From Octopus bimaculoides (Eukaryota), in contig NC_068984.1 in NCBI RefSeq assembly GCF_001194135.2, positions 91,302,013 through 91,335,210 on the forward strand: DNA of 33,198 bases, in the 5' to 3' direction. Shown piece by piece: positions 2,712 to 24,797 of this stretch. The translations under genes were made by a program, and so were the position numbers. The notes beneath the pieces were generated by a model. The model was not told the DNA's origin. It made no database searches and saw only the letters and a program-made list of their open reading frames with translations. Within the stretch, counting starts at the first letter, position 1. The number at the start of each line of letters is the position of its first letter.

Positions 2712-2910
2712 TTTATTTGTTTCAGCCAATTAGACTGTGGTCATGCTGGGGCACTACTTTGAAAAAATTTTAGTCAAATGAATCGGCCCCAGTCATTTTT
2801 ATTAAGGCCTGATACTTATTCTGTCAGTCTCTTTTGCTGAACTGCTAAGTTACGAGAACATAAAGCATTAAGTCAAGCAGTGGAGTTGAGGATAAACACA
2901 CACACACACA
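2712..2910 (-). mobile_element. tRNA-type SINE family A, 3' half
   Basis: TTGTTTCAGCC...CATGCTGGGGCAC...ACTTATTCT...CTCTTTTGCTGAAC aligns to the copies at 11129-11478 and 20893-21292. Confidence 0.75.
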
Positions 2911-2958
2911 TTATATATGTTTTCCGAAATGTATAGTACTATACATCCATCACGGCTG

Positions 2959-3041
2959 AACTTACCAATCAGTTTCATGCAAGGAATACGATGGAGTGCT
3001 AGGTAACAAACTGATTATATAACCTTACACTCATCAGAGTT
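2959..3041 (-). ncRNA. Minimal type-I hammerhead ribozyme motif (core intact)
   Basis: Minus strand reads AACU-CUGAUGA-GUGUAAGG...CCUUGCAU-GAAA-C-UGAUUG-GUA/AGUU. Stem I AACU:AGUU, 8-bp stem II base, GUA cleavage triplet. Confidence 0.75.
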
Positions 3042-3386
3042 AGCTGATATGGAAGGAACATGGTGACTGCTCTCTATTGTCAGAGGTGGATTAGCACAAC
3101 TGGTGTGCGGCTACTGTGAAAAAGGTGGTGAAACAAGAAAGGGCCAGAGGATTAGGTTAGGAATTAATGTCCCTTGGTTAGGTATGCTGTGAGACCAGTA
3201 AGAATTATCTTGAAGTGTTTGTGGGGAAAGTGTGCATCATTAAGTGTGGTGCTCTTGTGGGGATGTCCTAAACTAATCCCCTAGTCCTTTCTCATTTCAC
3301 CCCTTTTTCACAGTAGCTGCACACCAGTTGTGTTAATCCACCTCTGACAATAGTGAGCAGTCCCCATATTCCCTTCGACGTCGGAT

Positions 3387-3469
3387 AACTCTGATGGGCA
3401 TAAGGTTATACAACCAGATTGTTACTTAACACTCCATTGTATTCCTTGTGCAAAACCAACTGGTAAGAT
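3387..3469 (+). ncRNA. Degenerate hammerhead motif (inverted sister of 2959-3041)
   Basis: AACU-CUGAUGG-GCAUAAGG...CCUUGUGC-AAAA-CC-AACU-GGUA/AGAU. A9G and G12A changes, so probably inactive. Confidence 0.6.
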
Positions 3470-3869
3470 CAGCTGTGATGGATATATAATACTATACATT
3501 TCGGATAATATATCCACTGTGTTGACAGATATAGGAGTGCATCTTTTCCCTAACTTATGGTCTCTTAGATGACTCATGTGCGCATATATATATATATANN
3601 NNNNNNNNNNNNNNNNNNNNNNNNNNNNNNNNNNNNNNNNNNNNNNNNNNNNNNNNNNNGTTAGCGTGAAAAACCTCATAGGGGAAAAATTTATTAATTA
3701 TTCCCTTTAAATATAATTATTTATATTAAGGGCATTACTATACATAAATGCCTCACGCTAGGAGGGACTCTTAAAGTCAAATCTACTGTAATAAACACAT
3801 TGTACCGAACACGAGGAAATGCAACTCTCGAAGCGAGCCTTTTAAAAACAGATTGAGCTGCTGATCATA

Positions 3870-4629
3870 GAGTTTCTAAATTCATATTAAACATTTCCAG
3901 CCATGACTGTCGTTTTCAAGAACTGGATAATATATAAAAAAAAAAAAAATATATATTTATGTATATATATATATATATGTAAAAAGGTTGAATTAGATTC
4001 GTCCTTTAATATGGAGGTTTCCAAAAAATGATTTCTAATATAGATTCTTCATATTTTGCTGGTAGCTTACTGGTATAAAATTGTGAATATGAAAATAATA
4101 CTTGTATATGGCGTGTTGTGAATTTATGGAAAGAAATCCCATAAAATTCAACAATTTTGATAAAAATGGAGAAGAGAAGATGTTAAAATATAGAAGAGAA
4201 GGTGTTAAAATATAGAAGAGAATTTTAATTCATGCAGACGGTCGTTTCATACGGCAATATAAAAATCATGCAAATTCATGGTTGAATAGAATTGATTAAA
4301 TTAATTTGATTAAATTAAATTAATTATATATCACTGTACTCTTCAGTGCAAGAAATACAAACAAATTTTTTACAAAGGACTTGAGAAAGGAAAAAGCAGA
4401 ATAGGACCTAGGGGATTCATATTTATCCTAATGATAAAGAAAGATATGTGTGAGTCCAGTTAGGTATTAATACCTAGGATTATGAATGCATGAAGCTAAC
4501 AGTGAAAAAACCTTTGGTGAGAAAGTCTATATGAATTAATTAGTAAGAAACAATACATTTGCCAAAATATCCAGTTCTTGAAAATGACACTGTCATGGCT
4601 GGAAATGTTTAATATGAATTTAGAAACTC
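3870..4629. mobile_element. 760-bp non-coding element bounded by ~62-bp inverted repeats (MITE-like) with an internal hammerhead
   Basis: GAGTTTCTAAATTCATATTAAACATTTCCAGCCATGAC... (3870-3932) is the reverse complement of 4567-4629. TA flanks both ends (3868-69, 4630-31). Confidence 0.7.
4233..4350 (-). ncRNA. Minimal type-I hammerhead ribozyme motif with GUC site and 91-nt stem II
   Basis: Minus strand reads UGCA-CUGAAGA-GUACAGUGAUAUA...UAUUGCCGUAU-GAAA-C-GACC-GUC/UGCA. All conserved core bases present, G10.1.U11.1 wobble. Confidence 0.78.
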
Positions 4630-4749
4630 TATTGTTCCAAAACAATTGTAAAAAAACTAATAAGCAAACATGAAAAACCTATGATGCAGAAGATAAAAAC
4701 TCCTATATAATTATGTATTGAATGAAACATATACAAAAGAAAAGCTGTT

Positions 4750-5100
4750 CCCTGCAGCCATAACTATGTGGTAAGAAGTCTGCCTCCCAACTACATGGTT
4801 CCATGGATTGCGACCATGCTGGGGCATCACCTTGGAGAGTTCAGTTGAACAAATTGACCCTAGTACTTTGCGAGCGTGGTACTTATTCTGTTGGTCACAT
4901 TTTGCTGATCTCAAGTGATAGTGGGGAACAAACACACACATAGAGATATATTCAGCTTCTGTCCACCAAATCCACTGACAAGGATTTGGCCAGCTCAGGG
5001 CCATAGAAGAAGATACTTTCCCAAGATGCTATACAGTTGGACTGAATCCAAAATTGTGTGGTTCGTAAGCAAACTTCTTATTACACAGCCATGCCTGCAC
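4750..5100 (-). mobile_element. SINE family A, near full-length minus copy preceded by a ~50-bp plus-strand head fragment
   Basis: 4805-5100 matches family A in reverse (head ...TTACACAGCCATGCCTGCA). 4750-4802 (CAGCCATAACTATGTGGTAAGAAG...) is a head in forward orientation. Confidence 0.7.
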
Positions 5101-5149
5101 ACACACACACACACACACGCACACACGCATCTGGCACCTTACTGTACTC

Positions 5150-5420
5150 AAGAAGACTTGTCCACCACAGAAGAATTGATACCGATGCTGGTGCTACACA
5201 AAAGGCACCTAGTATTCTCTGATTGGAGCTGGTAAGGTTGGGGCTTGGACCAGGCTCCATTGTCTGTTCTGGGATGGTTGGCATTAGGAATGGCATTCGG
5301 CCGTAGAATCTATGCCAGAACAGACAATGGAGCCTGGTGCAGGCCCTGATCTTACCAGCTCCAGTCAAACTGTCCACCTCTTACCAGTATGGAAAACAGG
5401 TGTGAAATGATGATGATGAT
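5150..5420 (+). mobile_element. Orphan RTE 3' tail with internal inverted duplication
   Basis: TTGGCATTAGGAATGGCATTCGGCCGTAGAA...CCAGTATGGAAAACAGGTGTGAAATGATGATGATGAT matches the RTE 3' UTR at 62-200. Confidence 0.7.
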
Positions 5421-5437
5421 AATTATATATATGTATG

Positions 5438-5488
<51 letters not shown>

Positions 5489-5768
5489 ATATATCTGAAT
5501 TAAGACCTTAATTTACAAATAAAGAAATTATATATCCACCAATGCAGTGCTGAGCACTCATTTCATCGTTCTACATTTATATCTATCTATCTATCTATAT
5601 ATATATCTATCTATATATATATCTATCTATATATATATATATATATATATATATGTTCCATATTTTGAAGGTCTTAGACCAACATGTTTTGGATTTGACA
5701 ATATGCCATAAAGCTAAACCCTTTATGGACAGGAAACCCAGGGTAATCCCATAAACCGGCCTTCCCCA

Positions 5769-5808
<40 letters not shown>

Positions 5809-6005
5809 GATAGATAGAGAGAGAGAGAGAGATAATCACACATAGACACACACACACACACACACACACTATATATATATATTTATATCGATATGTGTGT
5901 TTACACTCTATACACACACACAAACACAGATAGAAAGATGTGTGTGTGTGCGTGCGTGTGTGTGTGTGTGTGTACAAAATATATGGACACACGCACACAC
6001 AGACA
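5420..6005. repeat. Compound microsatellite field (TA, TATC, GA, CA, GT) interrupted by short unique blocks
   Basis: Directly visible dinucleotide and tetranucleotide runs. Confidence 0.9.
5691..5749 (+). ncRNA. Degenerate hammerhead motif
   Basis: GGAU-UUGACAA-...CCAUAAAG-CUAAACC-CUUUAUGG...-GAAA-CCC-A-GGGUA/AUCC. Stem I GGAU:AUCC, near-palindromic stem III, core has C3U and G8A. Confidence 0.45.
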
Positions 6006-6468
6006 AACACGTAAACACTTTTCTACATGGGTTGATTAACCTATATTATGTAAACGTATTGAAATTTATACATGAAAAGATTAGTGCTTTCGAAGATACT
6101 GACATAGACACACGTGTATTTACATAAATGATGTAGTGATATACATGTTATAGTAGTGGCAATTTTAGTTCTATAAATATCACACACATTTGGTGTACGT
6201 CATGTCTACAACTATTTCCTCGAGGAAAACGCCCTCTGCTCAAGTTTTTCTCGTGCATACTCTTCTCTCTCCCCTCTGTTATTTACTTACTCTTTAGCTC
6301 TCTCTCTCTCTCTCTTTCTTTCTCTCATTCTGTTGTTTATATTTTCTTTTCCCGTCATACAATGACAAATGAGTGCTCTTGCCCTCTTGCGCAATCACAC
6401 ACACACTACCCCCTCCTCCCACATCACACGCCCTCAAATCAACAATTACCTGTTTTATAATTTGTGTA

Positions 6469-7783
6469 GTTATTGTGTCAAAAAGTTCCTGGACTAGTTA
6501 CGTTTAATAAAAAAGACTTATTTGCCTAAGTTTTAACTTCATATCCTTTGAAATAGTCACCTTGCACAGCAATACACTTGTCCCAGGTTCCTTCACTTTT
6601 GGAATCTGGCCTGGAAGTCGTTTTCCGTAAGCAAGTGGAGGACCTTCCGTGATTTGTTCTGGATCTCAACAATGGGGTTAAAACAGCAACCTTTGAGCTG
6701 CATTTTCATCTTGAGGAAGAGATGGAAGTCTGCAAATGCTAAATCTGGCGAATAGGGCAGGTGCAGAAACGATACTATGTTGTTTTTGGTGAGAAATTCA
6801 CGAGTGAGGAAAGCTTGGTGACAGGGTGCATTGTTGTTGTGAAGAATCCAATTCTTCATGCTCCACAGATCTGGGCACTTTCACCAAATGTCCTCCCTCA
6901 AATGCTTCAAAATTTTAACCGTAGAACTCTTGATTGATGGTCTGGCCCTGGGAGGCAAATTCTTGCTGCACAATTGTGCAGATGTTGAAAAAAATGATAT
7001 GCATGCTCTTGATTGAGCTGTGACTCTGTTATGCCATTTTTGGTTGTGGAGGTGAAGGGCTCTTCCATTGTGATGAATGTTGATTTGTCTCAGGGTTGTA
7101 CCTGTAGACCCAACGCACGTCACTGGTGATGATCCTCGACATGAAGGATGGGTCATCAGTAGCATGCTGATGGAGATCTTGACAGTCTTTGACGTCTTCT
7201 GCTCAGTGGTCAGCAGGTGGGGGGGGGGGACAAACTTGTCAGAGAGACACTGCAGGTTCAATTCAGAAGTTAAGATTACCTGCACGGACCCATACAACAG
7301 ACCAACAACATCAGCGATGTCATTTATTGTCCTCCAACGATCCTCATATATAAGCTGATGAAGTTTCTCCACATTTCTGAGGGTGACACTTGTGGCAGGT
7401 CTTCCAGATTGCTCATTATCTTCCAGGGATGTTCTTCCGCTTTTGAAGTGCCTGTTCTACTTGAAACATTGCGTATGACCCATTGCCTTATCACTGTAAG
7501 CTTGCCAAAGTATGCTCAATGTTTATGTAGTAGACTTCTCAAGTTTAATGCAAATTTCACGTTGGCTCTTTGTTCCAACTTCCTGTCCATGACAAAATCA
7601 CAGACTGCATCATACATATGATCATAAAAACACAAATTTCACAACTTGCAAAGTAAACACAGTGATGTCACTCAGCACACTGCCTCATGAAGGACACTGC
7701 TAGCTCTCACTGTGCATGCAGCTGTTGCTGCCATCTGTTGGCACACTACTAAATTAGTCCAGGAACTTCTTGATACTACCTTG
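6469..7783 (-). mobile_element. Full-length (~1.3 kb) decayed mariner (DD34D) DNA transposon
   Basis: TIRs ...GTGTCAAAAAGTTCCTGGACTA (left) and TAGTCCAGGAACTTCTTGATACTACCTTG (right), TA at 6467-68 and 7784-85. Transposase remnant inside. Confidence 0.92.
6526..7590 (-). pseudogene. Mariner transposase pseudogene
   Basis: Reads MDRKLEQRANVKF..., IITSDVRWVYRYNPET (ITGDETW-like), WILHNNNAPCH and HLPYSPDLAFADFHLF. Several frameshifts and stops. Confidence 0.9.
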
Positions 7784-7876
7784 TACACTAAACATGCACT
7801 GCATGCAGAACTCACTGGTGACAGAAGAGTAAAAAGAATATTTGATGCTATTAATTTTTATTATTACTAACAACAT

Positions 7877-8090
7877 GAAGGTGGCAAGTTGGCAGAATCA
7901 TTAGCACACTGGTAAAAATGCTTAGTGGCATTTCATCTGTCTTTATGGTCTATGTTCAAACTCCTTCGAGGTTGACTTTGCCTTTCATCCTTTTGGGGTC
8001 GATAAATTAAGTACCAGTGAAACACTGGGGTTGGTGTAATCAACTAATTCCCTCCCCCAAAATTTCAGGCCTTTAATAGAAAGGATTATT
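7877..8090 (+). mobile_element. tRNA-type SINE family B, copy 1
   Basis: Head GGTGGCAAGTTGGCAGAATCATTAGC, core CTTTCATCCTTTTGGGGTCGATAAATTAAGTACCAG, tail GAAAGGATTATT. Confidence 0.85.
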
Positions 8091-8148
8091 TACTAATAAG
8101 TTGGCTACTATTTATGTTTATCATTATTAATAATCTCATATTAATATG

Positions 8149-8343
8149 ACTGCAAGGCAGAATCATTTGAGCACTGGAAGAACACGCTACTATATTTCTT
8201 TTAGCTCTTTTTGTTCTGATTTTAAATCCTGCCAAAGTCTTTCATCCATTTGGGACCAATAAAATAAAATACTAGTCAAATAGTATTGACTAATCTTCTC
8301 CTCTCAAAGTTGCTGGCCTTGCACCTAAATTAGAAACAGTTAT
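8149..8343 (+). mobile_element. SINE family B, copy 2 (degraded)
   Basis: GGCAGAATCATT...CTTTCATCCATTTGGGACCAATAAAAT...GGCCTTGCACCTAAATTAGAAAC. Confidence 0.65.
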
Positions 8344-8494
8344 TGATGAGGCAGTGTCATCTTAATATGACTATATGATGGCAAAAAGGCAGGATTGTTA
8401 CAACATTGGAAATATATGTTGCAACATTTGGCATGATTCTTTACACTCATATTCAACCAAAGTCAACGTTATCTTTTATTCTTCAGAAGAGATA

Positions 8495-8675
8495 CCTTGC
8501 AGCAATTTCCTGACACTTTACGTTCTGAGTTCGAATCCTACTGAGGTTGGTTTTACTTTGCATCCTTTCTGGATTGATAAAATAAAGTATTAATTAAGTA
8601 TCAGGATCCATGGTATCGACTAATCCCCTTCTCTCAAAATTACTGTTTTAAGTCTAAATTAGAAACCATTATTAA
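8495..8675 (+). mobile_element. SINE family B, copy 3 (degraded)
   Basis: B-box GTTCGAATCC, core TTTGCATCCTTTCTGGATTGATAAAAT, tail TTAGAAACCATTATT. Confidence 0.65.
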
Positions 8676-8763
8676 TAGTGGTTGTTTACTTGGAAGTGAA
8701 GTTCATGCTGACTTCTCGAAACATTGAAAACCTATTGGCAACACTTCAAAGTAAACAGTTACT

Positions 8764-8986
8764 ATTAATAATGGTTTCATATTTTGCTTCCAGGCCAGCA
8801 ATTTCAGAGGAGGGGGTAAGCCGATTACATTGACTCCAGTGTTCCACTGGTACTTATTCTATCAACCCCAAAATGATGGAAGGCAAATTTGACCATTGCA
8901 GAATTTGAACTCAGAATGTAAAACCAGAAGAAATGCTGTTAAGCATTTTTCCTAGTGTACTAATGATTTTGTCAGCTTGCCACCTT
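8764..8986 (-). mobile_element. SINE family B, copy 4
   Basis: Reverse complement of copy 1 from tail (AATAATGGTTTC) to head (GCTTGCCACCTT). Confidence 0.8.
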
Positions 8987-8997
8987 AAAGTTATTAT

Positions 8998-9215
8998 TAA
9001 TAATCCTTTCTACTATAGGCACAAGATCTGAAATTTTGGGGGAGGAGTTAAGTTGATTACTCTGACTCCAGTACTCCACTGGTACTTAATTTATTGACCC
9101 TGAAAAGATGAAAGGCAAAGTTGACTTCGGCAGAATTTGAACTCAAAACATAAAGCCAGAAGAAATGTTATTAAGCATTTTGCCCAGTGTGCTAACGATT
9201 CTGCCATCTCACCGC
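8998..9215 (-). mobile_element. SINE family B, copy 5
   Basis: Reverse complement of copy 1 from tail (AATAATCCTTTCTA) to head (CTGCCATCTCACCGC). Confidence 0.85.
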
Positions 9216-10120
9216 ATTAAAGCCACTATTAATAATAAAAATGTATTATATATAATAATGACAGGATCTGATTGACAGTCTCACACACTCATATACATAA
9301 ATATACTTTCACACTCACACATATGGGATGGAGTGGTGAGTTGATCTCAAGATGCTGGACTTCTCAAAGATGATAACTGTAATGATTGATGACATGCAGT
9401 GCTGGGGAAGACCTATCCAGTGCAAGCAAGGCACAACAGCCATTCAGACAGTGGTAGTGATAGAGGTTAGGGTATACAATGTATATATACTAAGTCTCTT
9501 GCTCATTATATTTCATGTAAGTCTCCATTTACTGCCCTCTTCAGTCATCTCTCATCTATAACTTGTCTTCTATTCATTGTACCATGCCATCTGTACAGTG
9601 AGGGAATGGCACTTAATCTATCTATATTCAATTTCCTTCACTATCACTCTTTATCATTTTCCTTATCTTCCACCATTACTCCTTTATCTATCTCATTTCC
9701 ATTGTAATACCTATGTGATGAGGGATAATATCAAATCTGTCTGCATTCAGTTCCCTCTACTGTCTCTCTCTTCATTGATATTTATCATTGCTCATCTCTA
9801 TTACAATCCATTATTTGTCCTCTTTGAACATAATCCATCTTTATTGTTATCTCAGCATGCTGCTCATGCTCTTTCTCTATTCAATCTCCTTACCAACAAC
9901 CAGGATGCAGCTATCACTATCTCTCTTCCATTACTCCCTCTCCATATTATTGTCCTTCTCCTATCCCTCTATTTCCTATCCTTATATTCATATTCTCTTT
10001 TCTTTTATCCACTTGATCATTAGTCCCTTTATTCTATGTACCCTCTTAGTCATGTTTATTTTGAATGATTAGAGACACTACAGAGCAAACATTTTAGTTT
10101 TGCAAGAGACAGGGTAACTT

Positions 10121-10299
10121 CACTTGTGCTGGTATCATGATAAAATGTGGTTGATATTAGAAATAGTATCTAACCATGGAAGCCATGCTAAATTGGAATG
10201 TATGAATGAGATGAGATCCTCTGACCCATCTTAAAGAGCAGTAGCTCCAAATATGAGCAAACTTGGACCATTACAACCTGTTTAACCTATACCAGCATG
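10121..10299 (+). mobile_element. Degraded RTE 3' tail
   Basis: TTGATATTAGAAATAGTATCTAACCATGGAAGCCATGC...AACCTATACCAGCATG resembles the tail at 16860-17004. Confidence 0.5.
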
Positions 10300-10434
10300 A
10301 GGAGGAGGAGGATGGGAAGAGGAAGAGGAGGAGGATGGGAAGAGGAAGAGGAGGAGGATGGGAAGAGGAAAAGGAGGAGGAGGAGGAGAAAAAGAAGAAG
10401 AAGAAGAAGAAGTAGTAGTAGTAGTAGTAGTAGT
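10299..10434. repeat. Compound purine-rich repeat: ~3x GAGGAGGAGGATGGGAAGAGGAA(G), then (GGA)n, (AGA)n, (AGT)n
   Basis: Directly visible. Confidence 0.9.
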
Positions 10435-11128
10435 CCTGAAAAGATTCACAGTTAGTAGTTTGTAACTTTATTCCTTTCCTGTGAGATCCATGGAAATTCC
10501 ACAGAATGAAAAAGACTAAGGGACGCGGTCAAACTAAAGCGTTTCACCCAAGCTCAAAAATAAAAAAAAAATTAGTGCAATAGGTGTAAAGCAATTTGCT
10601 GTGAACGAATATGAAGAGAAAAATGCACGCTCACGAACAGGGGTGGGTGGGGAGAGGACTGGGAACATTCACATTGTGAATGTTCTGAGACACCCACCAG
10701 AGCCAAGAAACAAAAGAAAAATACTGTAATAGATGTAAAACAGCTTCCTCTGAAAGAATATCAAGAACACACACACACACACACATATATACACACATAT
10801 ATATATATATATATACACATATATATATACATACATATATANNNNNNNNNNNNNNNNNNNNNNNNNNNNNNNNNNATGTATATATATATAAAGAAGACCA
10901 CTTCTAGAACATTAGCTGTCCCCCTTGTGGTCTCCTTTATATATACATATACAATAATCCTTTGAGATCTCAGATAATTTTTCTGAATCTCCTGATTCTT
11001 TCAATGTGCTAGTTCCATGGTATTAAATTGATAACAACAAACAAGATGAGGACGAATATCCGTCAATTGTAAATAATGTAAATAATCTCTTCTAACCTTT
11101 CTAATACCCAACCTGGATCTTTCCCCTG

Positions 11129-11478
11129 CTCTTACTCTTTTACTCTTTTACTTGTTTCAGTCATTTGACTGCAGCCATGCTGGAGCACCACCTTTAGTCG
11201 AGCAAATCGACCCCAGGACTTATTCTTTGGAAGCCTAGTACTTATTCTATCAGTCTCTTTTGCTGAACCACTAAGTTACGGGGATGTAAACACACCAGCA
11301 TCAGTTGTCAAGACACACAAACACTCATAATACATATATATATATACATATATACGACGGGCTTCTTTCAGTTTCCGTCTACCAAATCCACTCACAAGGC
11401 TTTAGTCGGCCTGAGGCTATAGTAGAAGACACCTGCCCAAGGTGCCACGCAGTGAGACTGAAACTGGAACCATGTGAT
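11129..11478 (-). mobile_element. SINE family A, well-preserved copy lacking the extreme 5' head
   Basis: (GAGTAAAA)n tail, core GTCCTGGGGTCGATTTGCTCGACTAA, internal (TA/CA) microsatellite. CpGs retained. Confidence 0.88.
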
Positions 11479-12169
11479 CCAGAACTTACTATGCTTCTTG
11501 GACGCAACCAATATCACTTCTATATTTTACCTTCACCACTAAAAACATTTACTGGATTCTATCACTGAATATTTATGTAATATTTACCTAAAGAACACCA
11601 TATCACCAGTTGGATACCTTTTCAACTCTCCTGTACATGCTATTTCTCATCTATCAGTCTCCGGTTTTATTTCACACTACATATCCCTTACTTCTTGCTA
11701 CCAAAAAGAACAATGCCTAATCTTCCACCTTGGCTGCTCTCCACCTTTGTGTATGAAAAGTGTGGCTAGGATAACATAACTACACTCCACCACCCCATGT
11801 TCCATCCTCTCACATTCATTCCATCATGGTATGCCACACTTTTACACACCCATCTCACAGACTGCACACGCACACTTTCCTATCCATCTATACATTTATA
11901 AACATTGAACACACCACAAATTACACTGACATATGGACATAACTTCCCACTTCATGTGCATGCACCCACAAACACACTGACATACATACCATCTTACCCT
12001 GAACCTACAAACATATCTCTAACTTACCACCCCCTCACACATTGCTCTATATCATAAGACACTACACAAATATTGGTATCCCTCTTTTATCACACATATC
12101 CCATGTATTTATGCACATGCACAACTACTGGTATTGTGAGCTCCCCACTACTTCTCTCAATTTCCCTCC

Positions 12170-12330
12170 CTCGCTACTTCTCACCCTCCACTTTTCTTTT
12201 TCTCTTCCTTGTCCCACTCACCCTCTCTCTTTTTACTTTCTCTCCCCTCTCTCTCTCTCTCTCCCTCCCTCTCCCTCTCCCTCTCTCTCCCCCTCTCTCT
12301 CTCTCTCTCTCTTGCTCCATCACTCTTTCT
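12170..12330. repeat. (CT)n / pyrimidine-rich tract
   Basis: Directly visible; source of the R/E-rich spurious ORFs. Confidence 0.9.
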
Positions 12331-12696
12331 CGATTTAAAACCACTGTGACCCAGATTGTGCCTCCACTTCTGGTTCTCCTTTTCCATTTCCCAGCTTTCA
12401 TACCATCTGAGACCTGTCTTCTGGACAAACATCATATTTGGTATCGTAAATTTTTTTGATTCTCTTACCTCTCAGTTCATTTTCCTATGCTTCTTTTTGT
12501 ATTCTGCTTGATGACAGGTATCATCTGAAACATCAGAATTTCTTCTATTTACTCCTTTAGCATGTTAAGCTTCACTGTACACATCTTTGTTGTTTTCTCA
12601 CTTTGTGTTTCTACACTTTTCAGCTATGTGCTTTGGTTGCCTGATTCTATGCAGCATTTTTATTTGTTTCCTCCTTGCCTCAAATTGTACTCATGT

Positions 12697-14270
12697 TATC
12701 ATCATCATTATCATCATCAGTTAACGTGCTGGCATATGTTGGATGGTTTGACAGGAGCTGGCCAGCAGGAGAGTGGTCCAGGCTCCATTTGTCTGTTATG
12801 GCATGGTTTCTATGCCTGGATGCCTTTCCTTCCACCAATCACTTTACAGAGTGTGCTGGGTACTTTATATGTGGCACTGGCATGAGTACTTTTTATGTAG
12901 GTAGATTCCTGTCCATTTTCCTTCTTACTAGAACTTTGTCTTTGCTAAGTTAACTTTAAGGCCCTTTGATTCCACATCTAGAATGCCTTTCCTAATTCTG
13001 TTACAGAGTGAGATCATTAGTATGTTGTAGTTCCCAAGTTCAGCTGGTCTTAAATTCTTCTGTTATGGCCTGGAAGACAGTGATGAATAGAAGGGGACAG
13101 AGAACTGAACTCTAGTGAACTCTTATCTGTACTCTAAATTAAATGCTGTACACATGCTAAAAGTACTTACTTTTAATTGATATTTCTCTTGCATTGTTTT
13201 ATTTAGAAGATGGCATTAGTACTACTTCTCCCTGGCACAAAACCAAACTGCATCTCATCTATTCTAACTCTTTTCTTAATTATTTGAGCTGTAACTTGCT
13301 TCATAATTTTCATGATCTGGTCCAACCATTTGATAGTAATTATTTCTATTGAAGGCATCTTCTTTACACTTGTTACAGCTGACTATAATGCTGCTACACC
13401 ACTCATTAGGTATAATACTTTCCTGTACAACCTGATTGACTTTATATGTGATTTGGCCATATTCTACCCCGCTAAGTATTTTAAGCATCTCTGTGGTAAT
13501 TTCTGAGGTACTAGGGGCTTCCCTATCTTCATATCCTTAATTGCCTGTCAATCCCTGTTTTGGTTCCACAATGGAAAGACTCTCTTTCTCCTAGACATTT
13601 TCCATGTTTAATAGCCTCTTCTAGTAGCACTTCCATGCTTCTGTCTTTTCAGAATCACTAAGTGCAAGTGCTTCATTATCTATCTATTCTTTTCACCCAC
13701 AACAACTTCATTTTCTCTGATACACTGTCTTGCAATCTGGAACACCTCACATTTGTAATCTTCATGTTGTAGAGCATAAGTAAATTTCCTCCTTTCTAAT
13801 TCCCTCTTTGCTATGTAAACCTGTCGCCTAGCTTCACTTCTTGCTACCTGCTATATTTCTCTACTACTCTCATTTCTTCCACTTGCAGGCCTGTCGTTTC
13901 ACTTTTATAGCTTAATTTACTTCACTGTTCCACTATTACATCACCCTTGGTCTGATCACCCTTGTTCCAGTTACAGATTTGGTCTGGAACTCTCAGGACA
14001 ACTGGAAGATCTGTGCAAACATCCAGTTGTCCTCTGCATTCTGTGTCTCTAACTTTTTGCCAAATACTTAAATTAGTATGTCTCTAACTTTCTTACTGTT
14101 TGCTGGGCCTTTGAGCTTCTGTATCTTTCTTTTCCAGCTCTAAGTCTGGAGTCATTAACCACTAACCTATGTAACGTAGAACATTCTTTGCATTTACAAG
14201 CATCTGTCTTGCCCTGTTTTCTAGTGAGAATGTAGTCAGTTTGGTTTGTGTGCCCACCAGCTGTTACGTG
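12697..14270 (-). mobile_element. Second, more degraded and internally deleted copy of the RTE LINE
   Basis: (ATG)n tail and 3' UTR at 12697-12900; RT pieces collinear with 1030-1900 (IIPNEWCSSIIVSCNKCKEDA); endonuclease piece QTDYILTRKQ...HRLVVND at ~14150-14270. Confidence 0.8.
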
Positions 14271-15344
14271 GTAGCAGGACATGCTAGAAATAGCAGCATA
14301 ATCTTTCCTTTTCTGGAGAAAGGAGCCGTTTGCACGTGATTTTGATGTCACATTCGTTGAAAGCATGCAAAATAACCTGGAAAAGACAAACAGACCCACG
14401 AAACAAAATTCCCTTTTTCCTGAAAAAAGTGGCTTGCAGCAGGTTTGGAGGTTAGATACATTGAATGCATCCCAAAAAAACTGAGCAAAAAAGTTATTCC
14501 ACACCGAGGTACAAAATATTTACCGAAAGAATAAAATCTTGTACCGATTATACCTGTATTTTAATTAATTCGAATTAATGTACCTCATCTTGAAAAGTGG
14601 CAAAATCTTTGTTGGTTGCCATTTGGGATAATTTTAGTAACAAATCAAACAAGTAAGATGCATTAAAAATTTCAATTTTAGTGTTTATCCATAATGTTAT
14701 TGCTTTTACACCTGTTAATTAAATTTACCTGCCCATAAGATGAGCTAAAATTACATAACTATAAACCAGTGGTATATAAAGCACCCACTGACAAAATTTC
14801 AAATCTGCATGTAAAAAATTTACAAAGTTACGAGCAAGTATCTTGAACCTGAATAATTCAAAATAACGTGAACAAATAAGTAAAACATTTGATAGATTAA
14901 TATGAACACTAAAGATGTTTTTAGGTGTTTTTTTCCTTACACACATAACATAGCCTTGCTCGGTTGGAACTACATGTGTTACTTTGACATCATCATTCCA
15001 TAAAATTTGTTTATGGAGAGAAAAATATTGAGAAATATCAATAGATGTGTGAGTGAGAAAGAAACGAGGAGGGAGGTTTTGGGACGTGCTAGAAACAACA
15101 GCTAGATCTCCCTTAAATCACACATTTTCCTCTGAAATTATTAACAATTTTTTTTTAAACTGAAAATGGCCAAAACCATTTCAGACTGGGGTCGTGAGGG
15201 GGTTGCAGGAGTGAAAGAAAATTTTCAAAGTTTTTTTTTTTTATGGAAAGATGCCTCCCATCATTCTGAAGACTTTGGTGAAAAACATTGGAAAAAATCT
15301 CTGTCAAAATGGAGAAATTCCAATTTATGTGGGCCATCTGATCC

Positions 15345-15645
15345 AAAACTCTGTTTTCCAGAAACTCCCCCCCCCCTTCCAAACATTTTGTCAACAAATT
15401 TCCTTGTAATCGTAATCTACACTGTTTGAAAGGTATCTGTATAAAATTTCATTAAAAAATACCTATTTTCCAGGAAGTTATAAAGGGGAAAATGTCGGGT
15501 CCTGTTAATTTTCCAAAACTCCTCTCCCCAACCCCTCGGAAAATATTTTCCCAACAAATCTTTAGACACACTCAATCTACAGGATATAAGCAATTATTTG
15601 GTGAAAGTTTCATTAAAAAGTATCCAGTTTTTTCTGGAAGTTATG
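15345..15645. repeat. Diverged ~160-bp tandem dimer inside an unclassified repeat
   Basis: CCAAAACTC, AATCTACA and AAA/GTTTCATTAAAAA...GGAAGTTAT each recur ~160 bp apart. Confidence 0.55.
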
Positions 15646-15919
15646 AGGCAACAAAGTTGGCAGGGTATTGAACTGTAGTTATACCTTTTTTCAATAAAAT
15701 TTAACGTTAAAGAATTGATGTTAACTTCTGTTGCATTTTCAAAGAATTAACAGATTAACGATTAACAATGTTAACTTTTCGATTAACGGTGCCCTTCTCT
15801 GCATATACACATATATACACATACACTTACACAAACATATGTGTATATATAGATACATATATACATATATTTAGACACACACACAGGTACACTAAGACAT
15901 ACACACATGCACTTTGATA

Positions 15920-16626
15920 TAGCTAAGCACCAAATGCCAGATCGAAAATCAATCAGAGTGATTTAGAATAATATTGGGCAAACAGAAAGTCATGTTGCAA
16001 AAAAGCTGGTGGGCTGTATATACATTAGCTATTAGTGACAGAAACAGCCTTTGTAATAAATATTAATTAGTACATTTTGGTCTGGCATTAGGGGCTTGGC
16101 TAGTTGCTGACGATGATCTGCAATACAGTGAAATCATGTGATTCAGTTGTGCCATTCACCAGTGCTGATGAAATTCTGTCAACTGATAGAATTTTGATGC
16201 TTCGTAGCATTTGTCATCTACACAATGATTTTTCAGGACATTCACCGCAGTTATAATGTTATAGACAAGACATCCAAGTTATGTTAGATGTGTTAATTAA
16301 TATTTGTTACAAAAGCTGCTTCTTTCACAAATAGTTAATTTTATACACAGCCTGCAAGCTTTTTGTGACACTACTGGCTGTTTGGCCAATATTATTCTGT
16401 ATCGGCTTGACTGATTTTTGATCACTGATAATTTACTATAATACACTGTATCATGTAATACATCTGCCATCCACTGGTTGTGACAAAATTTTGTCAACCA
16501 ATAGAATTTCAATGCTTCTTAGCATTTGTTATTGATACAAAACGACTTTTGGGGAATGTTCACCCTAGTCTACTAGGGCAGTATTAACAACACATCCAAG
16601 TTATGTTGGATGTGCTAGTTAATATT
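15920..16626 (+). mobile_element. Tandem-plus-inverted ~320-345 nt repeat with hammerhead remnants (retrozyme or PLE pseudo-LTR-like)
   Basis: Direct repeat B at 16107-16304 and 16425-16626. Segment A at 15940-16069 is inverted at 16294-16423. Short IR at 15920-15949 and 16074-16102. Each B starts with CTGA(C/T)(G/A)A. Confidence 0.55.
16102..16148 (+). ncRNA. Hammerhead-like motif with short, weak stem II
   Basis: AGUUG-CUGACGA-UGAUCUGCAAUACAGU-GAAA-UCAUGUG-AUU/CAGUU. Stem III AUCAUGUGAU is one CpG-type change from a perfect palindrome. No 10.1-11.1 pair. Confidence 0.45.
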
Positions 16627-16647
16627 ATATATATGTGTATGTAAATA

Positions 16648-17004
16648 GCACCATTTGAGCGTGATCGTTACGATTGTCTCCTTCCTGGCACTTGTGCCAG
16701 TGGCACGTGAAAAGACATTCGAGCGAGGTCGTTGCCAGTGCCACTGGACTGGCTCCTGTGCAGGTGGCACATAAAATACACCATATTGAGTGTGGCCGTT
16801 GCCAGTACCACCTGACTGGCCTTTGTGCCAGTGGCACGTAAAAGCACCCACTACACTCTCAGAGTGGTTGGCGTTAGGAAGGGCATCCAGCTGTAGAAAC
16901 TCTGCCAAATCAGATTGGAGCCTAGTGTAGCCATCTGGTTCACCAGTCCTCAGTCAAATTGTCCAACCCATGCTAGCATGGAAAGCGGACGTTAAATGAT
17001 AATG
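16648..17004 (+). mobile_element. RTE 3' UTR/tail with three tandem ~65-bp units
   Basis: GTGCCAGTGGCAC-type hairpin at 16694, 16758 and 16825, then TTGGCGTTAGGAAGGGCATCCAG...GCATGGAAAGCGGACGTTAAATGAT. Confidence 0.85.
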
Positions 17005-17092
17005 NNNNNNNNNNNNNNNNNNNNNNNNNNNNNNNNNNNNNNNNNNNNNNNNNNNNNNNNNNNNNNNNNNNNNNNNNNNNNNNNNNNNNNNN

Positions 17093-17141
<49 letters not shown>

Positions 17142-17330
17142 GCATATATACACATGTACATATATGCATAAATATGTATATACTTTTACATATAAACATG
17201 AATATCTATATCTATCTGTCTGTCTGTCAAATTTGAGTACATGCTTTCTTATAACCAACACAACTGTAAGCCAATGAATATGATTATGTAACTCCTGTTC
17301 TTTTATCATTCATTTAGTAATTAATATATA

Positions 17331-18292
17331 CAAGGGTTGGACAAAATAATGGAAACACCTAGCATCATAGCATCATAATTTTGAAATATCTATAAAACCA
17401 TCTAAAGCTTTTTTATTTTTATGTTTTTTGATTTATTATTAGTGTTGCTTAGTATGCTTTGCTAAAATTGCTGTTTCTTTTCAGATATCATCAGAAAAGG
17501 GTAATTAAAATTCACTAAAATGACAGATCTATCAGACTTTCAAAGAGGTCAAATTGTTGGTGCTTGTAGGGCAGGCACTAGTGTAATGAAAACAGCTGAA
17601 ATGTTTGGTATATCAAGAAGTACTTTCTCAAAAGTAACGACAGCTTTTGAGACAGAGGGAAAAACCTCCTTGTTGAAACAAAACTCTGGAAGAAAACCAA
17701 AACTTTCAGATAGGGACCGTTAGACTTTTACACAAATTGTTAGAAAGGATCACAAAATTACTGCAGAGCTTAATGCGCACCTCGGGAACCCAGTTTCCAC
17801 AAAAACTGTTTGCCGGGAGCTGCACAAAGCTGGATTTCACGGGAGGGCTACAATCAGAAAACCACTACTTTCAAAGACAAACGTTGCAAAGCATTTAGAG
17901 TGGAGTAAAAACCTACAGAATTGGTCCCTAGAGCAGTGGAAGAATGTTATTTTCTCGGATGAGTTATCCTTTACCTTCTTTCCAACCACCGGCTGAGTAT
18001 ATGTGTAGAGATAGCCAAAAGAAGCACTTGACCCAGACTGCCTTCTTCCAACTGTTAAAAATGGAGGAGGATCTGTGATGATCTGGGGGGCTATAACTTG
18101 GAAATTAGCCAGCCCAATGGTTTCCCTTATTAGCAAAATTAATAGTCAAGACTATTTAAGCATTTTATCTGATCAAATTCATCCTATAGTTGCGGAACTG
18201 TTTCTGGAGGGAAACGCAATCTTTCAGGATGATAATGAACCAATCCAAACTTTGTACAAGACCATACCTCATAGAATTCAAGCTGTAATTAC
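17331..18292 (+). mobile_element. Tc1-family DNA transposon (right end lost in N gap)
   Basis: TA followed by TIR CAAGGGTTGGACAAAATAATGGAAACACC; Tc1-type transposase follows. Confidence 0.9.
17520..18292 (+). pseudogene. Tc1-like transposase pseudogene (in-frame stops, C-terminal deletion)
   Basis: One frame gives MTDLSDFQRGQIVG...SGRKPKLS, KPLLS, WKNVIFSDE, TVKNGGGSVMIWG and IFQDDN. It then jumps to LYKTIPHRIQAVI, deleting the segment expected to hold the catalytic E. Confidence 0.9.
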
Positions 18293-18571
18293 NNNNNNNN
18301 NNNNNNNNNNNNNNNNNNNNNNNNNNNNNNNNNNNNNNNNNNNNNNNNNNNNNNNNNNNNNNNNNNNNNNNNNNNNNNNNNNNNNNNNNNNNNNNNNNNN
18401 NNNNNNNNNNNNNNNNNNNNNNNNNNNNNNNNNNNNNNNNNNNNNNNNNNNNNNNNNNNNNNNNNNNNNNNNNNNNNNNNNNNNNNNNNNNNNNNNNATA
18501 TATATATATATATATAAAGTAAAAAATAAAAGAGTCAAAAGGAAGAGTAAGTCCGGTTAGGCAGCTTTTTA

Positions 18572-18693
18572 ATCACTACAAATGTTTCAATACATACAGA
18601 TCCTCGTATATACAGGATTTAAAGTTAAGTTTAAATTAAATTATGTAATGATTTACCTGTATAAGAAGATCTATATGTATCACCTCAGGTGAT
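18572..18693 (-). ncRNA. Hammerhead motif, mutated sister copy
   Basis: AUCAC-CUGAGGU-GAUACAUAUAGAUCUU...AGGAUCUGUAUGUAUU-GAAA-C-AUUU-GUA/GUGAU. A9U and C11.1U changes. Confidence 0.65.
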
Positions 18694-19044
18694 ACTCAGT
18701 TGCTGTCTCCGTAAGTAAATCTAGATTTCCATGCTACAACATCCATGGCTTCTTAATTGAAACTAACAAACGCTGACAGTTTCAATTTGCTCAGTATGAG
18801 TGTGTTATCACGTTTGACATGAGCTGCAATGTGCACATTGTCTGTTTATTTATTCAGTTTCAACATGTTATTCTGCACATGCCAAACTACCATTACGCAA
18901 AATACATTCATCCATTAGCTCATACTTATACAATCACTTACACACTGATATACCATACATCACTGAGTGCTTCCATACATGCACACATACACACACACAT
19001 AAAAGACATCCCAATTCCATCCAAAAATGGATGGCAACTGAGTT

Positions 19045-19164
19045 TCACCTGAGGAGATACATATAGATCTTTTTATACAGGTAAATCATTACATAATTTA
19101 ATTTAAACTTAACTTTAAATCCTGTATATACGAGGATCTGTATGTATCGAAACATTTGTAGTGA
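19045..19164 (+). ncRNA. Minimal type-I hammerhead ribozyme motif, intact core, 93-nt stem II
   Basis: UCAC-CUGAGGA-GAUACAUAUAGAUCUU...AGGAUCUGUAUGUAUC-GAAA-C-AUUU-GUA/GUGA. 16-bp stem II base (2 G.U) plus UAUACAGG:CCUGUAUA. Predicted cut after 19160. Confidence 0.82.
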
Positions 19165-19584
19165 TTAAAAAGCTGCCTAACCGTACTTACTTTTCCTTTT
19201 GACTCTTTTACTTTTTACTTTTTATTTTCACACACGAGGAATACCTAAGACTAGAATTGGTAGCATGCCATAAGAATACTACTGGCTATTTGGGAATTCT
19301 AAAGGTGAACAAGCTCTATTTGTACTCTTATATGTTCTTAACAGAACACACCTCAACTGACTATATATATATATATATATATATATATGGAATATATACA
19401 TCTGAAAGTGTGATATGTAATCAAATTTTAGCACTCAGTAGTCACTTCCACATTCCACTCCTGTATTCTAAATGGTTAAACAAATGGCATTAAAACATGG
19501 GTTGAGCTAGTGTGCAGAATGTGAACCACATAATAGAATTAACTAAAAGAATACAGAAAATGTATTTGGTATTTTAAGCTTTAT

Positions 19585-19656
19585 AAAACATACACGTTCT
19601 TTCAGCAACTGACAAGTTTACACAATAATCCTATCGATTTACCTCATCAGTGTTTT
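19585..19656 (-). ncRNA. Hammerhead motif with damaged stem III
   Basis: AAAACA-CUGAUGA-GGUAAAUCGAUA...UGUCAGUUGCU-GAAA-GAACGU-GUA/UGUUUU. 6-bp stem I; stem III looks like a damaged ACACGUGU palindrome. Confidence 0.6.
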
Positions 19657-20033
19657 GGTAAAATAGACAAAGTATAGCAGTAAGTTTGCTCATTCTGTAT
19701 TCCCATTATGCTAATAACCTATAACTTCACTGTAGTAGCAGAATACAGGGTAACAGAATGCAAATTAGTAGGAGGGAGTAAATAAAATATAGAAATATCA
19801 ATATGATGAGGGTAGTTGAAGCCATACCTTGTCTTATATATTTAAGCAGATACAGATACACACTTGTACACACAACTGTTCACATGTAAACACAATAGAA
19901 AGAAAAGAGGGAAAAGCGATAACCCTGGGGCAATGTAGCCTCAATGGTGAGGGCAACAACAGCAGCAACAACAATAATAATATCACCTGCAACAATAATT
20001 ACTATAGTAGTAGCAAAGATGTCAACTAAAATA

Positions 20034-20147
20034 CAAACAGCCACTGTCGTATATGACAATTGAAGGGTTTCAGTGATCACATCCTTTGATGGGTTTATAA
20101 TACCAGCTTTGGATAACCTGCTTTCAGTTAGACAGAGTGGCTGTTTG
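20034..20147. mobile_element. 114-bp mini-MITE / hairpin (Tc1/mariner-type ends)
   Basis: TA-CAAACAGCCACT...AGTGGCTGTTTG-TA: perfect 12-bp TIR with TA on both sides; further imperfect internal pairing. Confidence 0.55.
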
Positions 20148-20892
20148 TAAAAATTTCCATAATCTGTAGTGAGTGACATATAGTGTACCGTTCACCCACA
20201 CCCACATTCTTTTACTTACATATATCCACTTATCCCTGCATACCATTACCTACTCCACCCATGCATACACAGCCAGACAGAGACAACCACACAGAGAGGT
20301 GTGCATGCACAAACACACACGTTCTTCAATGCACCAATGCACATGTATCAATACATATACTCATCCACAAATTCCCTCCTTACTAGCATACTGTACTACA
20401 ACCAAACTTTTTAAGCTCTGGTACTCTTTCTACTCTATCTTTATGTAAGTTCATGAGGTCCAGTTAGTTTATTGGCCAACATGGTCCACAGTTGTAGGAG
20501 ATGCACGTTGCACTCCACAGAAGGGTGTATTATTATGTGCAATCCAGATTATTGTTCCAGTTATTGTACAGCCTTGATTGGATAATGTTCAGGTTGCTGG
20601 GTGTATTAAGTTACCCTTTGTCACACACTTTGTTCCTAATACTGTTATAATCTAGTACTCCGTAAAAATGTTGCAGATACAAGCATAGCCAGGGTATATA
20701 TATAGGCGGATAGGATGAGAAAGGGGTTTGTGCAGAGATATACAAACTGGAGCATTTCAGGTGACTCAATAAGATTATGTAATCTCACTTAACTAGTGTC
20801 TAATGTTACCAGTTGATTTACCAAAACATATATGTCTTAAACATGTAATTTAAAATACTAAATACTTTTTCAGTACATACACACACACAGAG

Positions 20893-21292
20893 GCAGAGGT
20901 GTGACTGCATGGTAAGAAGTTTCCTTCCCAACAATGTGGTTCTGGGTTCAGTCCCACTGGGTAGCATCTTGGGCAAGTGTCTTCTACTATAGTCAGAGGC
21001 TAACTAAATCCTTGTGAGTGGATTTTGTAGATGGAAACTGAAAGAAGCCTGTCATGTGTGTGTGTGTGTGTGTGTATTTATGTGTGTGTGTCTTTGTGTC
21101 TGTGTTTGTCCCTTCACCATCACTTGACAACCAATTTTGGCATATTTATATTCCTGTAACATTGTGGTTTGGCAAAAGTGACTGATGGAATAAGTACTAG
21201 GCTTACAAAGAATAAGTCCTGGAGTTTATTTGTTTGACTAAATGCCTTTAATGTGGTGCTCCAGCATGGCTGTAGTCAAATAACTGAAACAT
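20893..21292 (+). mobile_element. SINE family A, full-length older copy
   Basis: tRNA-like head with B-box-like GGTTCAGTCCC, internal (GT)n, core GAATAAGTCCTGGAG, 3' CTCCAGCATGGCTGTAGTCAAATAACTGAAAC. Confidence 0.88.
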
Positions 21293-21522
21293 NNNNNNNN
21301 NNNNNNNNNNNNNATGTATATATTAATATTATCTCAGTTTAAAAAAACCTTTGACAATGTAAATATGTTAATAGTTACCATGGGTAGCAAAAATTACACA
21401 AAAAACCAGGATATCACACCTGTTTTATAGGTAGAGATACCAAGTTGAAGTGATACATTTTGAGTAGATATGAATGATAACAATAAATGGAGCAAAACGC
21501 ATATAAATAAAAGTTCCTTTAA

Positions 21523-21609
21523 TTCCTACACATGTTTCAAAATATATATGTGCTCTCCTCCAAAGAAGTAAGAGCTGCTGGAATTCCACATATATTCATT
21601 GTCAGGGAA
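21523..21609 (-). ncRNA. Degenerate hammerhead motif
   Basis: UUCC-CUGACAA-UGAAUAUAUGUG...CACAUAUAUAUUUU-GAAA-C-AUGU-GUA/GGAA. Stem I UUCC:GGAA, 9-bp stem II helix, G8A change. Confidence 0.55.
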
Positions 21610-21684
21610 CCAACATATAAAGGCAAGACAAATGCAAAATGATGTGGTAATTTACGAGCTATAATATTATATGAACTTATTAGT

Positions 21685-23398: not shown

Positions 23399-23432
23399 NN
23401 NNNNNNNNATATATATATATATATATATATAT

Positions 23433-23590
23433 ACAACGGGCTTCTTTCAGTTTCCATCAACCAAATCTATTCACAAGGCTTTGTTTGGCCTAAGGCTATA
23501 ATAGAAGACACTTTCCCAAGGTGCCTTGCAGTGGAACTGAACCCAGAACCATGTGGTTGGGAAGCAAACTTCTTACCACACAGCCGTGCT
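23433..23590 (-). mobile_element. SINE family A, 5' half
   Basis: ACGGGCTTCTTTCAGTTTCC...CCCAAGGTGCC...GAACCATGTGGTTGGGAAGCAAACTTCTTACCACACAGCC. Confidence 0.85.
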
Positions 23591-24556: not shown

Positions 24557-24797
24557 ATGTATGACACATTGTCATAAAGCATTTCTCATTTGATCAATGT
24601 GATGTTTTCCATATCTTGAGCATGTTATTGCATAGATTAGGCTTTCAGATGCACAGATAAAGTTATTTCTTATTGTGAAAAATTGTCCCTGTTTGAAACA
24701 GATCTCTGATCCTTCTGTCAGGTTAAAATATATGCCACAGTTGGATCTTTTGCCTTTTATTTTTGTCCTGTTGTTATTGTGTAAAATTTGACATTTG

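Follow-up and report, generated by a model that had tools for sequence, protein, structure and literature searches.

Minimal type-I hammerhead motifs, most with a long helix II, in a 33-kb stretch of the Octopus bimaculoides genome

The window analysed here is a stretch of 33,198 nucleotides of the Octopus bimaculoides genome (contig NC_068984.1, positions 91,302,013 to 91,335,210 of the forward strand). Between positions 2959 and 21613 it contains nine motifs with the architecture of minimal type-I hammerhead ribozymes, together with a degenerate paralogue of one of them. The motifs are distributed in seven families that show no cross-similarity by blastn, in line with the about seven unrelated families of the original prediction, whose positions, strands and helix II inserts (54, 54, 91, 31, 16, 93, 93, 40 and 60 nt) were confirmed on re-reading. 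In all of them helix I has 4-8 bp, is open-ended and lacks an internal loop, the closing helix of helix II has 3-17 bp and helix III has 1-5 pairs. The motifs are free of N, the nearest gap being 75 nt off for 18572(-) and at least 129 nt for the others. They are probably minimal hammerheads of Penelope-like elements (PLEs), or of short non-autonomous elements mobilised by PLEs, fossilised in an octopod genome.

The seven families and their units

The first family comprises two copies in a head-to-head inverted pair of ~257-nt non-coding units at 2906-3522, the arms of which (2906-3162 and 3266-3522) are 83% identical. Copy A (2959-3041, minus strand) has an intact core and the layout AACU / CUGAUGA / 54-nt helix II / GAAA / CUGAUUGG / UA / AGUU, with an 8-bp closing helix on helix II, G10.1-U11.1, and a helix III segment, ACUGAUUGGU, that is fully self-complementary (5/5 pairs). 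Copy B (3387-3470, plus strand) has a decayed core, where CUGAUGG carries A9G and AAAA carries G12A, and retains the helices, with G10.1-C11.1. At its base, helix II shows two compensatory double substitutions between the copies, U-A against C-G and G-C against A-U. Each hammerhead is located ~50 nt from the outer (3') end of its unit; the outer end of the left arm leads into ATATATAAT and a (GT)n run, and that of the right arm is without microsatellite.

The fifth family forms a second inverted pair at 18512-19225, with 192-nt arms (18512-18703 and 19034-19225) of 96% complementarity, between which lie 330 nt that are neither palindromic nor coding. Copy B (19045-19164, plus strand) is the best example in the window, with the full consensus core and the layout UCAC / CUGAGGA / 93-nt helix II / GAAA / CAUUUG / UA / GUGA. 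Its helix II is rod-like, with a 17-bp closing helix, G10.1-C11.1 and a z of -4.7. Copy A (18572-18693, minus strand) is the same motif except for CUGAGGU (A9U) and G10.1-U11.1, and its 93-nt helix II rod has a z of -5.2. The unit shared by the arms extends from ~10 nt 5' of the hammerhead to ~55-60 nt 3' of it; the left end adjoins (TA)n followed by the gap at 18293-18497, and no such TA-rich sequence adjoins the end of the right arm. In both inverted pairs the hammerheads face outward, and 2959(-)/3387(+) and 18572(-)/19045(+) are each about 350 nt apart.

The third family is a single motif at 5691-5749 (plus strand) with a U3-A8 core and the layout GGAU / UUGACAA / 31-nt helix II / GAAA / CCCAGGG / UA / AUCC. 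Helix II shows an 8-bp helix past a 4x4 internal loop, and helix III self-pairs at 4/4 positions. The motif lies within a ~113-nt unit (5656-5770) between two (TA)n/(TCTA)n tracts.

The fourth family is located at 16101-16149 (plus strand; 16102 in the first reading, the name kept here) and has an intact core with an AUU site. Its layout is UAGUUG / CUGACGA / 16-nt helix II / GAAA / UCAUGUGA / UU / CAGUUG, where helix II is weak (3 bp and a 4-nt bulge) and helix III is fully self-complementary (5/5). The degenerate paralogue is found at approximately 16418-16465 (plus strand), and the two units align with 77% identity. The original prediction had counted it, at ~16425, as a tenth hammerhead-like motif; it proves to be a paralogue of 16102 in a ~320-nt repeat and is a hammerhead no longer. 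Both are part of a tandem/inverted repeat complex of ~320-nt units at 15940-16650. Immediately after this complex, three tandem GC-rich units of 64-67 nt (GCCAGTGGCACGT) occupy 16655-16843.

The seventh family is found at 21519-21613 (minus strand; 21523 in the first reading) with the layout UUGGUUCC / CUGACAA / 60-nt helix II (11-bp helix) / GAAA / CAUGUG / UA / GGAAUUAA. Stems I and II are reproduced in the minimum free energy fold and helix III self-pairs at 4/4 positions; the core, judged from its sequence, would be inactivated by G8A.

The second and sixth families are the weaker cases, both with an intact core. The second (4233-4350, minus strand) has the layout UGCA / CUGAAGA / 91-nt AT-rich helix II / GAAA / CGACCG / UC / UGCA, with a 4-bp closing helix that includes a G-U pair and an insert that forms no single rod (z -0.4). 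It lies between 66-nt inverted repeats (3867-3929 and 4568-4632), 95-98% identical. These repeats enclose a 638-nt AT-rich segment and a third copy, 79% identical, is found at 2558-2630. The structure at 3867-4632 may be a separate terminal inverted repeat (TIR) element, in which case 4233(-) would be a passenger or a chance motif. The sixth (19585-19656, minus strand) has the layout AAAACA / CUGAUGA / 40-nt helix II / GAAA / GAACGUG / UA / UGUUUU, with a 5-bp closing helix that includes a G-U pair and a helix III formed by the A-U pair alone.

The type-I core is complete in 2959(-), 4233(-), 16102(+), 19045(+) and 19585(-). The original prediction had all nine clearer motifs keeping CUGANGA and GAAA, which holds for these five and not for 3387(+), 18572(-), 21519(-) and 5691(+), which carry substitutions. 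On the departures of their cores from the consensus, 3387(+), 18572(-) and 21519(-) are read as decayed copies. Roughly half of the copies in the window have inactivating core changes; dead copies occur beside others with an intact core, in agreement with neutral decay once the units had been inserted. Upstream of each motif, translation gave no coding signal and no PLE coding remnant.

In the fifth, seventh and second families (19165-19172, 21511-21518 and 4222-4232) a UUAAA sequence comes immediately after the 3' strand of helix I or at most 3 nt beyond it. The same sequence is present in a bona fide PLE hammerhead from another animal (locus L009, about 3810-3830). Possible readings are an element akin to a poly(A) signal and a lengthening of helix I.

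The gaps in the window include 3599-3659, 10842-10875, 17005-17092, 18293-18497, 21293-21313 and 23399-23408. The five that fall among the motifs are all bordered, on one side or both, by (TA)n- or TA-rich sequence, and nearly all gaps touch (TA)n- or TA/CA-rich microsatellite in the same way. The boundaries of the elements are therefore blurred, chiefly at the left end of 18512-19225, and the motif calls are unaffected. The gaps look like unresolved microsatellite, and the assembly was probably broken by microsatellite together with inverted PLE-type insertions.

The window holds other repeats as well. A reverse transcriptase (RT) open reading frame (ORF) of a long interspersed nuclear element (LINE) at 22147-22896 shares 81-85% identity with proteins of Octopus vulgaris; a look-up of the exact product of the LINE ORF found nothing on record. 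Inside a LINE RT ORF an exact 57-nt duplicate (21792-21848 and 21859-21915) flanks a 10-N gap at 21849-21858; it resembles an unmerged overlap, so the gap is taken as an assembly artefact and the ORF at 21671-22006 is probably continuous. A ~400-nt family resembling short interspersed nuclear elements (SINEs) is found in both orientations (20890-21291, 11133-11476, 4914-5096 and 23409-23583) and is shared with the O. vulgaris loci L001-L003 in many copies at 70-85% identity. The LINE and SINE-like similarities to O. vulgaris mark the window as octopod DNA. DNA transposons are represented by a mariner-like helix-turn-helix ORF (6881-7372, minus strand) and a Tc1-like DDE transposase fragment (18075-18292, plus strand) cut by the gap at 18293-18497. 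Finally, a 232-nt tandem duplication (75% identity) at 8757-9220 has an inverted copy at 7839-8073, about 700-950 nt upstream, and a near-perfect hairpin of ~30 bp at 31163-31226, scoring equally on both strands against an unrelated microRNA model, is probably a small palindromic repeat.

Comparison with shuffled and permuted sequence

Three matches were obtained in the window with a strict descriptor (4 bp or more in stem I; CUGANGA; a stem II whose closing helix has 3 bp or more and whose insert does not exceed 125 nt; GAAA; A15.1-U16.1 plus at least one further base pair; H17), namely 19045-19164(+), 4233-4350(-) and 2959-3041(-). In 1000 block-wise dinucleotide shuffles 0.018 matches are expected, with a maximum of 1, so that the density of motifs in the window exceeds that of shuffled sequence, one of the checks named by the original prediction. 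The reversed window sequence gave no match to the strict descriptor. Since shuffling destroys natural hairpins, the core boxes were also permuted on the real sequence: among 5,040 permuted cores the true core alone gives three matches, and 4,945 give none.

Five motifs beyond the strict three pass looser tests. In the comparison of single motifs, where the descriptor permitted one core mismatch or a U3/A8 pair and a start of helix II at most 4 nt from the core, 2959(-), 5691(+), 18572(-), 19045(+) and 21519(-) were equalled in none of 300 shuffled windows and 16102(+) in none of 500. Exceptions are 19585(-), equalled in 10 of 300, and 4233(-), equalled in 24 of 300. A very loose descriptor gave 11 matches against 4.25 expected per shuffled window and is noisy, for which reason its other matches are regarded as background; the matches at 4153(+), 6980(+), 16161(+), 17379(-), 25128(+) and 31902(-) were rejected on this ground.

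Several features recur that the descriptor does not impose. A G at position 10.1 is present in all six motifs whose helix II begins at the core; C15.2-G16.2 and a GUA site are each found in 7 of the 9 motifs. The segment from A15.1 to U16.1 is fully self-complementary in four of the seven families (2959(-), 5691(+), 16102(+) and 21519(-)), with a null expectation of 6-10% each; 3 of 4 pairs form in 4233(-) and 19045(+), and only 19585(-) is poor. The motifs are far more frequent than chance, and the observation is largely right and statistically solid.

Penelope-like elements as the probable origin, and rival origins

A relic of a PLE endonuclease (EN) region is located at 24578-25031 (minus strand), outside 2959-21609, and contains a linker, a CCHH-type motif and a degenerate GIY-YIG. 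It was matched by tblastn with an O. vulgaris PLE EN fragment (E 6e-10), is frameshifted, is interrupted at about 24570 by another repeat and lies between two large gaps. A HMMER search with the relic returned 18 matches, and all eight inspected are PLE EN-type fragments; relatives of these matches carry PF01541 GIY-YIG and PF26215. Its type is the canonical one, with a C-terminal EN. No candidates came from a word-indexed search of proteins in which the O. vulgaris EN fragment was the query.

The relatives of the EN relic led to four bona fide PLEs from other animals, L005, L008, L009 and L010, of which L005, with ORFs for RT and EN, is itself arranged head to head as an inverted pair. Their minimal hammerhead ribozymes (min-HHRs) consist of CUGANGA, 7-13 nt, GAAA, CAUG/CCGG/CGCG and UA or UU; they follow the EN stop codon at a distance of ~120-200 nt, and a further 40-80 nt separate them from a 3' end adjoining (TA)n. 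In L009 (ENA ERZ25069865, about 3730-3860, plus strand) two successive min-HHRs occupy the 3' untranslated region (UTR) before a long (TA)n tract. The window units resemble these PLE 3' ends in their 5' truncation, inverted partner and fixed 3' tail, and several of them in the (TA)n junction; the core neighbourhood GAAA-CAUGUG/CAUUUG-UA is also the same, and the short and weak helix II of 16102(+) resembles those of L005 and L008.

In O. vulgaris, two elements of ~300 nt with (TA)n on both sides (L001 30870-31170, plus strand; L002 5299-5640, minus strand) each contain a U3-A8 min-HHR with a GUC site and a helix II of 13-14 nt. One of them adjoins a decayed PLE endonuclease ORF, and the PLE-linked hammerhead of L002 is decayed. 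From its sequence this short type would be a second hammerhead architecture in the genus, and it differs from the window motifs, which mostly have a GUA site.

The published PLE min-HHRs have a helix I of 4-5 bp, an enlarged helix II, a minimal palindromic helix III and a U3-A8 covariant, and occur as opposite-strand pairs 100-700 bp apart; they are extremely heterogeneous, and most of their thousands of copies stand alone (Cervera & de la Pena 2014, PMC4209133). The window motifs are alike in being type-I, with 4-8 bp in helix I and without a docking loop; in a helix III of 1-2 bp plus a self-complementary loop; in having both C3-G8 cores and the U3-A8 covariant; in opposite-strand pairs a few hundred nt apart and many unrelated families; and in that the copies are mostly single and remote from ORFs, and are placed close to the 3' end of the unit, in several cases at (TA)n. 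The placement by the original prediction among type-I minimal hammerheads of the PLE/retrozyme kind, with near-palindromic helix III, was thus sound, the architecture, pairs, U3-A8 core, heterogeneity and (TA)n agreeing with PMC4209133 and PMC8557442. PLEs insert as 5'-truncated copies, frequently next to a truncated copy in inverse orientation, and a microsatellite bias is reported for Naiad and Chlamys PLEs, with (TA)n in Naiads (PMC8557442); PLE endonucleases favour AT-rich targets and PLE integration proceeds in vitro without need for cleavage (PMC11167929).

Naiad PLEs, of which old remnants are present in cephalopods, also contain eight cases of an 'HHR_half_core' with CUGANGA and GAAA boxes 35-50 nt apart (Craig et al. 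2021, PMC8557442). The resemblance to the window motifs lies in boxes too distant for standard descriptors, in PLE 3' regions in the Naiad cases, and in the (TA)n targets that Naiads prefer; unlike the window motifs, the Naiad cases were not interpreted as folded hammerheads and their helices are unreported. Newt satellite 2 and avocado sunblotch viroid (Forster et al. 1988, via PMC4209133 and PMC6765202) share a monomer helix III that is unstable, palindromic and extendable in dimers, whereas their helix II is short, with tertiary loop contacts and a tandem satellite or viroid context.

On the basis of hammerhead structure and published PLE work, the following course may be proposed for the window motifs. 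Each lies near the 3' end of a non-coding, 5'-truncated unit, several abutting (TA)n; the units, which often form a head-to-head inverted pair, were probably inserted by target-primed reverse transcription, several into (TA)n-type microsatellite. In the parent transcript the core (C3-A9, G12-A14, A15.1-U16.1 and H17) would cleave after GUA or GUC. Two copies in one transcript could pair via the self-complementary helix III to give an 8-10 bp intermolecular helix. As helix III has 1-2 bp with a self-complementary loop and no loop on helix I is available for docking, cleavage is expected to be slow and to need two copies, as known from the hammerheads of PLEs, newt and avocado sunblotch viroid, and the lack of a helix I loop docking on helix II would give minimal-hammerhead rates. 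The PLE min-HHRs show low activity in vitro and need dimers (PMC4209133). Helix II would have grown to 31-93 nt, mostly as a rod-like hairpin, leaving the core undisturbed; its length should be tolerated, as helix II stacks on helix III.

A different origin, in non-LTR (long terminal repeat) retrozymes, is unlikely. In these elements, which are not PLE fragments proper, the transcripts of short tandem repeats are cut by their own type-I hammerheads and joined into small circular RNAs. The window units are, like them, short (about 110-520 nt), non-coding, AT-rich with low GC and furnished with type-I hammerheads, likely PLE-dependent (Cervera & de la Pena 2020, PMC7229834), and 16102/16425 is a ~320-nt two-unit repeat. 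Retrozymes, however, are built of repeats of about 170-400 nt in direct tandem order, every one of which bears a 'canonical' type-I hammerhead (helix I ~6 bp, helix II ~4 bp, loop1-loop2 contacts; PMC7229834), and apart from the degenerate dimer 16102/16425 the window shows no tandem array. Its copies are solitary or inverted and minimal; helix I has no loop, helix II is long, and the clear pairs run in opposite and not in direct orientation. The tandem arrays considered in the original prediction come down to 16102/16425, two degenerate units. According to the argument of a 2026 preprint, the retrozymes of animals derive from PLEs and are non-autonomous, so that this origin overlaps with the PLE origin preferred here.

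It is considerably less probable that the units are foldback or MITE-type (miniature inverted-repeat transposable element) DNA transposons, the pairs then being TIRs that fortuitously bear hammerhead-like hairpins instead of inverted retro-copies. Long inverted repeats do bound 2906-3522 and 18512-19225, and 4233(-) is placed between the 66-nt inverted repeats with their third copy at 2558-2630. In the two pairs, however, the hammerheads point outward with a fixed tail of ~50-60 nt, as in PLE 3' ends, and the same layout is found in L005; the arms of 18512-19225 are unequal partial copies of one unit, a pattern of 5' truncation; 5691, 19585 and 21519 are single copies without TIRs; and no associated transposase or clear target-site duplication was found.

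The weakest alternative, that hairpin-rich and AT-rich repeats carry CUGANGA and GAAA boxes fortuitously placed, is very improbable and for the whole set largely refuted, since against the shortness of the motif, the 4.25 loose matches per shuffled window, the absence of an Rfam match and the 8% (4233(-)) and 3% (19585(-)) of shuffled windows as good stand the strict count (3 against 0.018), the first rank of the true core among 5,040, the six motifs never equalled in 300-500 shuffles, the G10.1, C15.2-G16.2 and palindromic helix III kept though not imposed, and the compensatory helix II changes; it could still explain 4233(-) and 19585(-) taken singly.

The assignment of the motifs to PLEs or PLE-mobilised elements has several observations against it. 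Taken individually, 4233(-) and 19585(-) are barely better than chance, and the former has an insert that is not rod-like and sits within a TIR-like structure. No hammerhead in the window adjoins a PLE ORF. The tail of the fifth family and the L005/L008 PLE 3' ends (TTTTTACTTT) are colinear but T-rich and not significantly similar (E 0.05-0.2). With at most two copies of each family to hand, a family consensus could not be built. The bulged nucleotide between A9 and 10.1 that is typical of min-HHRs is absent in six motifs, and the typical G10.1-C11.1 is replaced by G-U in 4 of the 6 motifs whose helix II begins at the core (2959(-), 4233(-), 18572(-) and 19585(-)). The six PLE-linked hammerheads that were fetched (L005, L008, L010, two in L009, and L002) have a helix II of 7-14 nt. 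An Rfam cmscan of the window (gathering score; E<=10) with the models Hammerhead_1, HH9, HH10, II and 3 gave no hammerhead, only low-complexity microRNA noise; in a control the same models also miss the short min-HHRs of bona fide PLE loci, so that this silence is uninformative on a long helix II and the test has little power. The idea, present in the original prediction, that it is the long stem II that hides such motifs from searches finds no support in this result, as ordinary short PLE min-HHRs are missed too.

Helix II and hammerhead motifs in octopods

The main point of difference from known systems is helix II. In 8 of the 9 motifs it measures 31-93 nt, and in the first, fifth and seventh families it folds as a long rod, that of the fifth with 17 + 8 bp and a z of about -5 against shuffles. 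The window motifs depart here from the PLE min-HHRs, with helices II of 31-93 nt (rods of up to 17+8 bp) against published stems of 6-8 bp with small loops, and also in the mostly absent bulge after A9 and a 10.1-11.1 pair that is often G-U. In the searchable literature, which does not include the descriptor limits of earlier surveys, no description of a long (31-93 nt) PLE helix II was found; 'long helix II' there means about 6-8 bp, and what comes closest are the 'HHR_half_core' cases of Naiad PLEs. As none of the fetched PLE-linked hammerheads has a long helix II, the link of the long type to PLEs rests on resemblance and context.

Searches of other sequence returned the short type alone. 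In 100 kb (79 kb of it from O. vulgaris) only two strict matches were found, both with a short helix II and U3-A8, and the large genomic population of long-stem-II hammerheads foreseen by the original prediction did not appear there. By blastn, none of the seven elements had a copy in 100 kb of sequence from O. vulgaris and related loci, and an exact-pattern scan for the fifth family in JGI metagenome contigs gave no matches. The long helix II is a plausible new variant of a motif class that is itself known. A bolder proposal can be advanced only tentatively: octopods, perhaps coleoids in general, may carry a PLE or PLE-dependent lineage with a rod-like helix II of 30-90 nt that is missed by current descriptors and covariance models, possibly in thousands of copies, and the rod may be functional, in recognition by RT or EN or in small RNA processing.

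Few ribozyme motifs are as abundant in the genomes of animals as PLE hammerheads, whose role is unsettled. For annotation, the inverted, microsatellite-embedded fragments of the window would be PLE-type debris, and are a likely cause of the assembly gaps found here. If a long-helix-II class exists, genomic hammerhead counts would be underestimated and surveys would need wider limits on helix II. The occurrence in one genus of short U3-A8/GUC and long C3-G8/GUA types, if true, would offer a natural comparison for the role of helix II, for which folding stability, dimer geometry and protein binding are the candidates.

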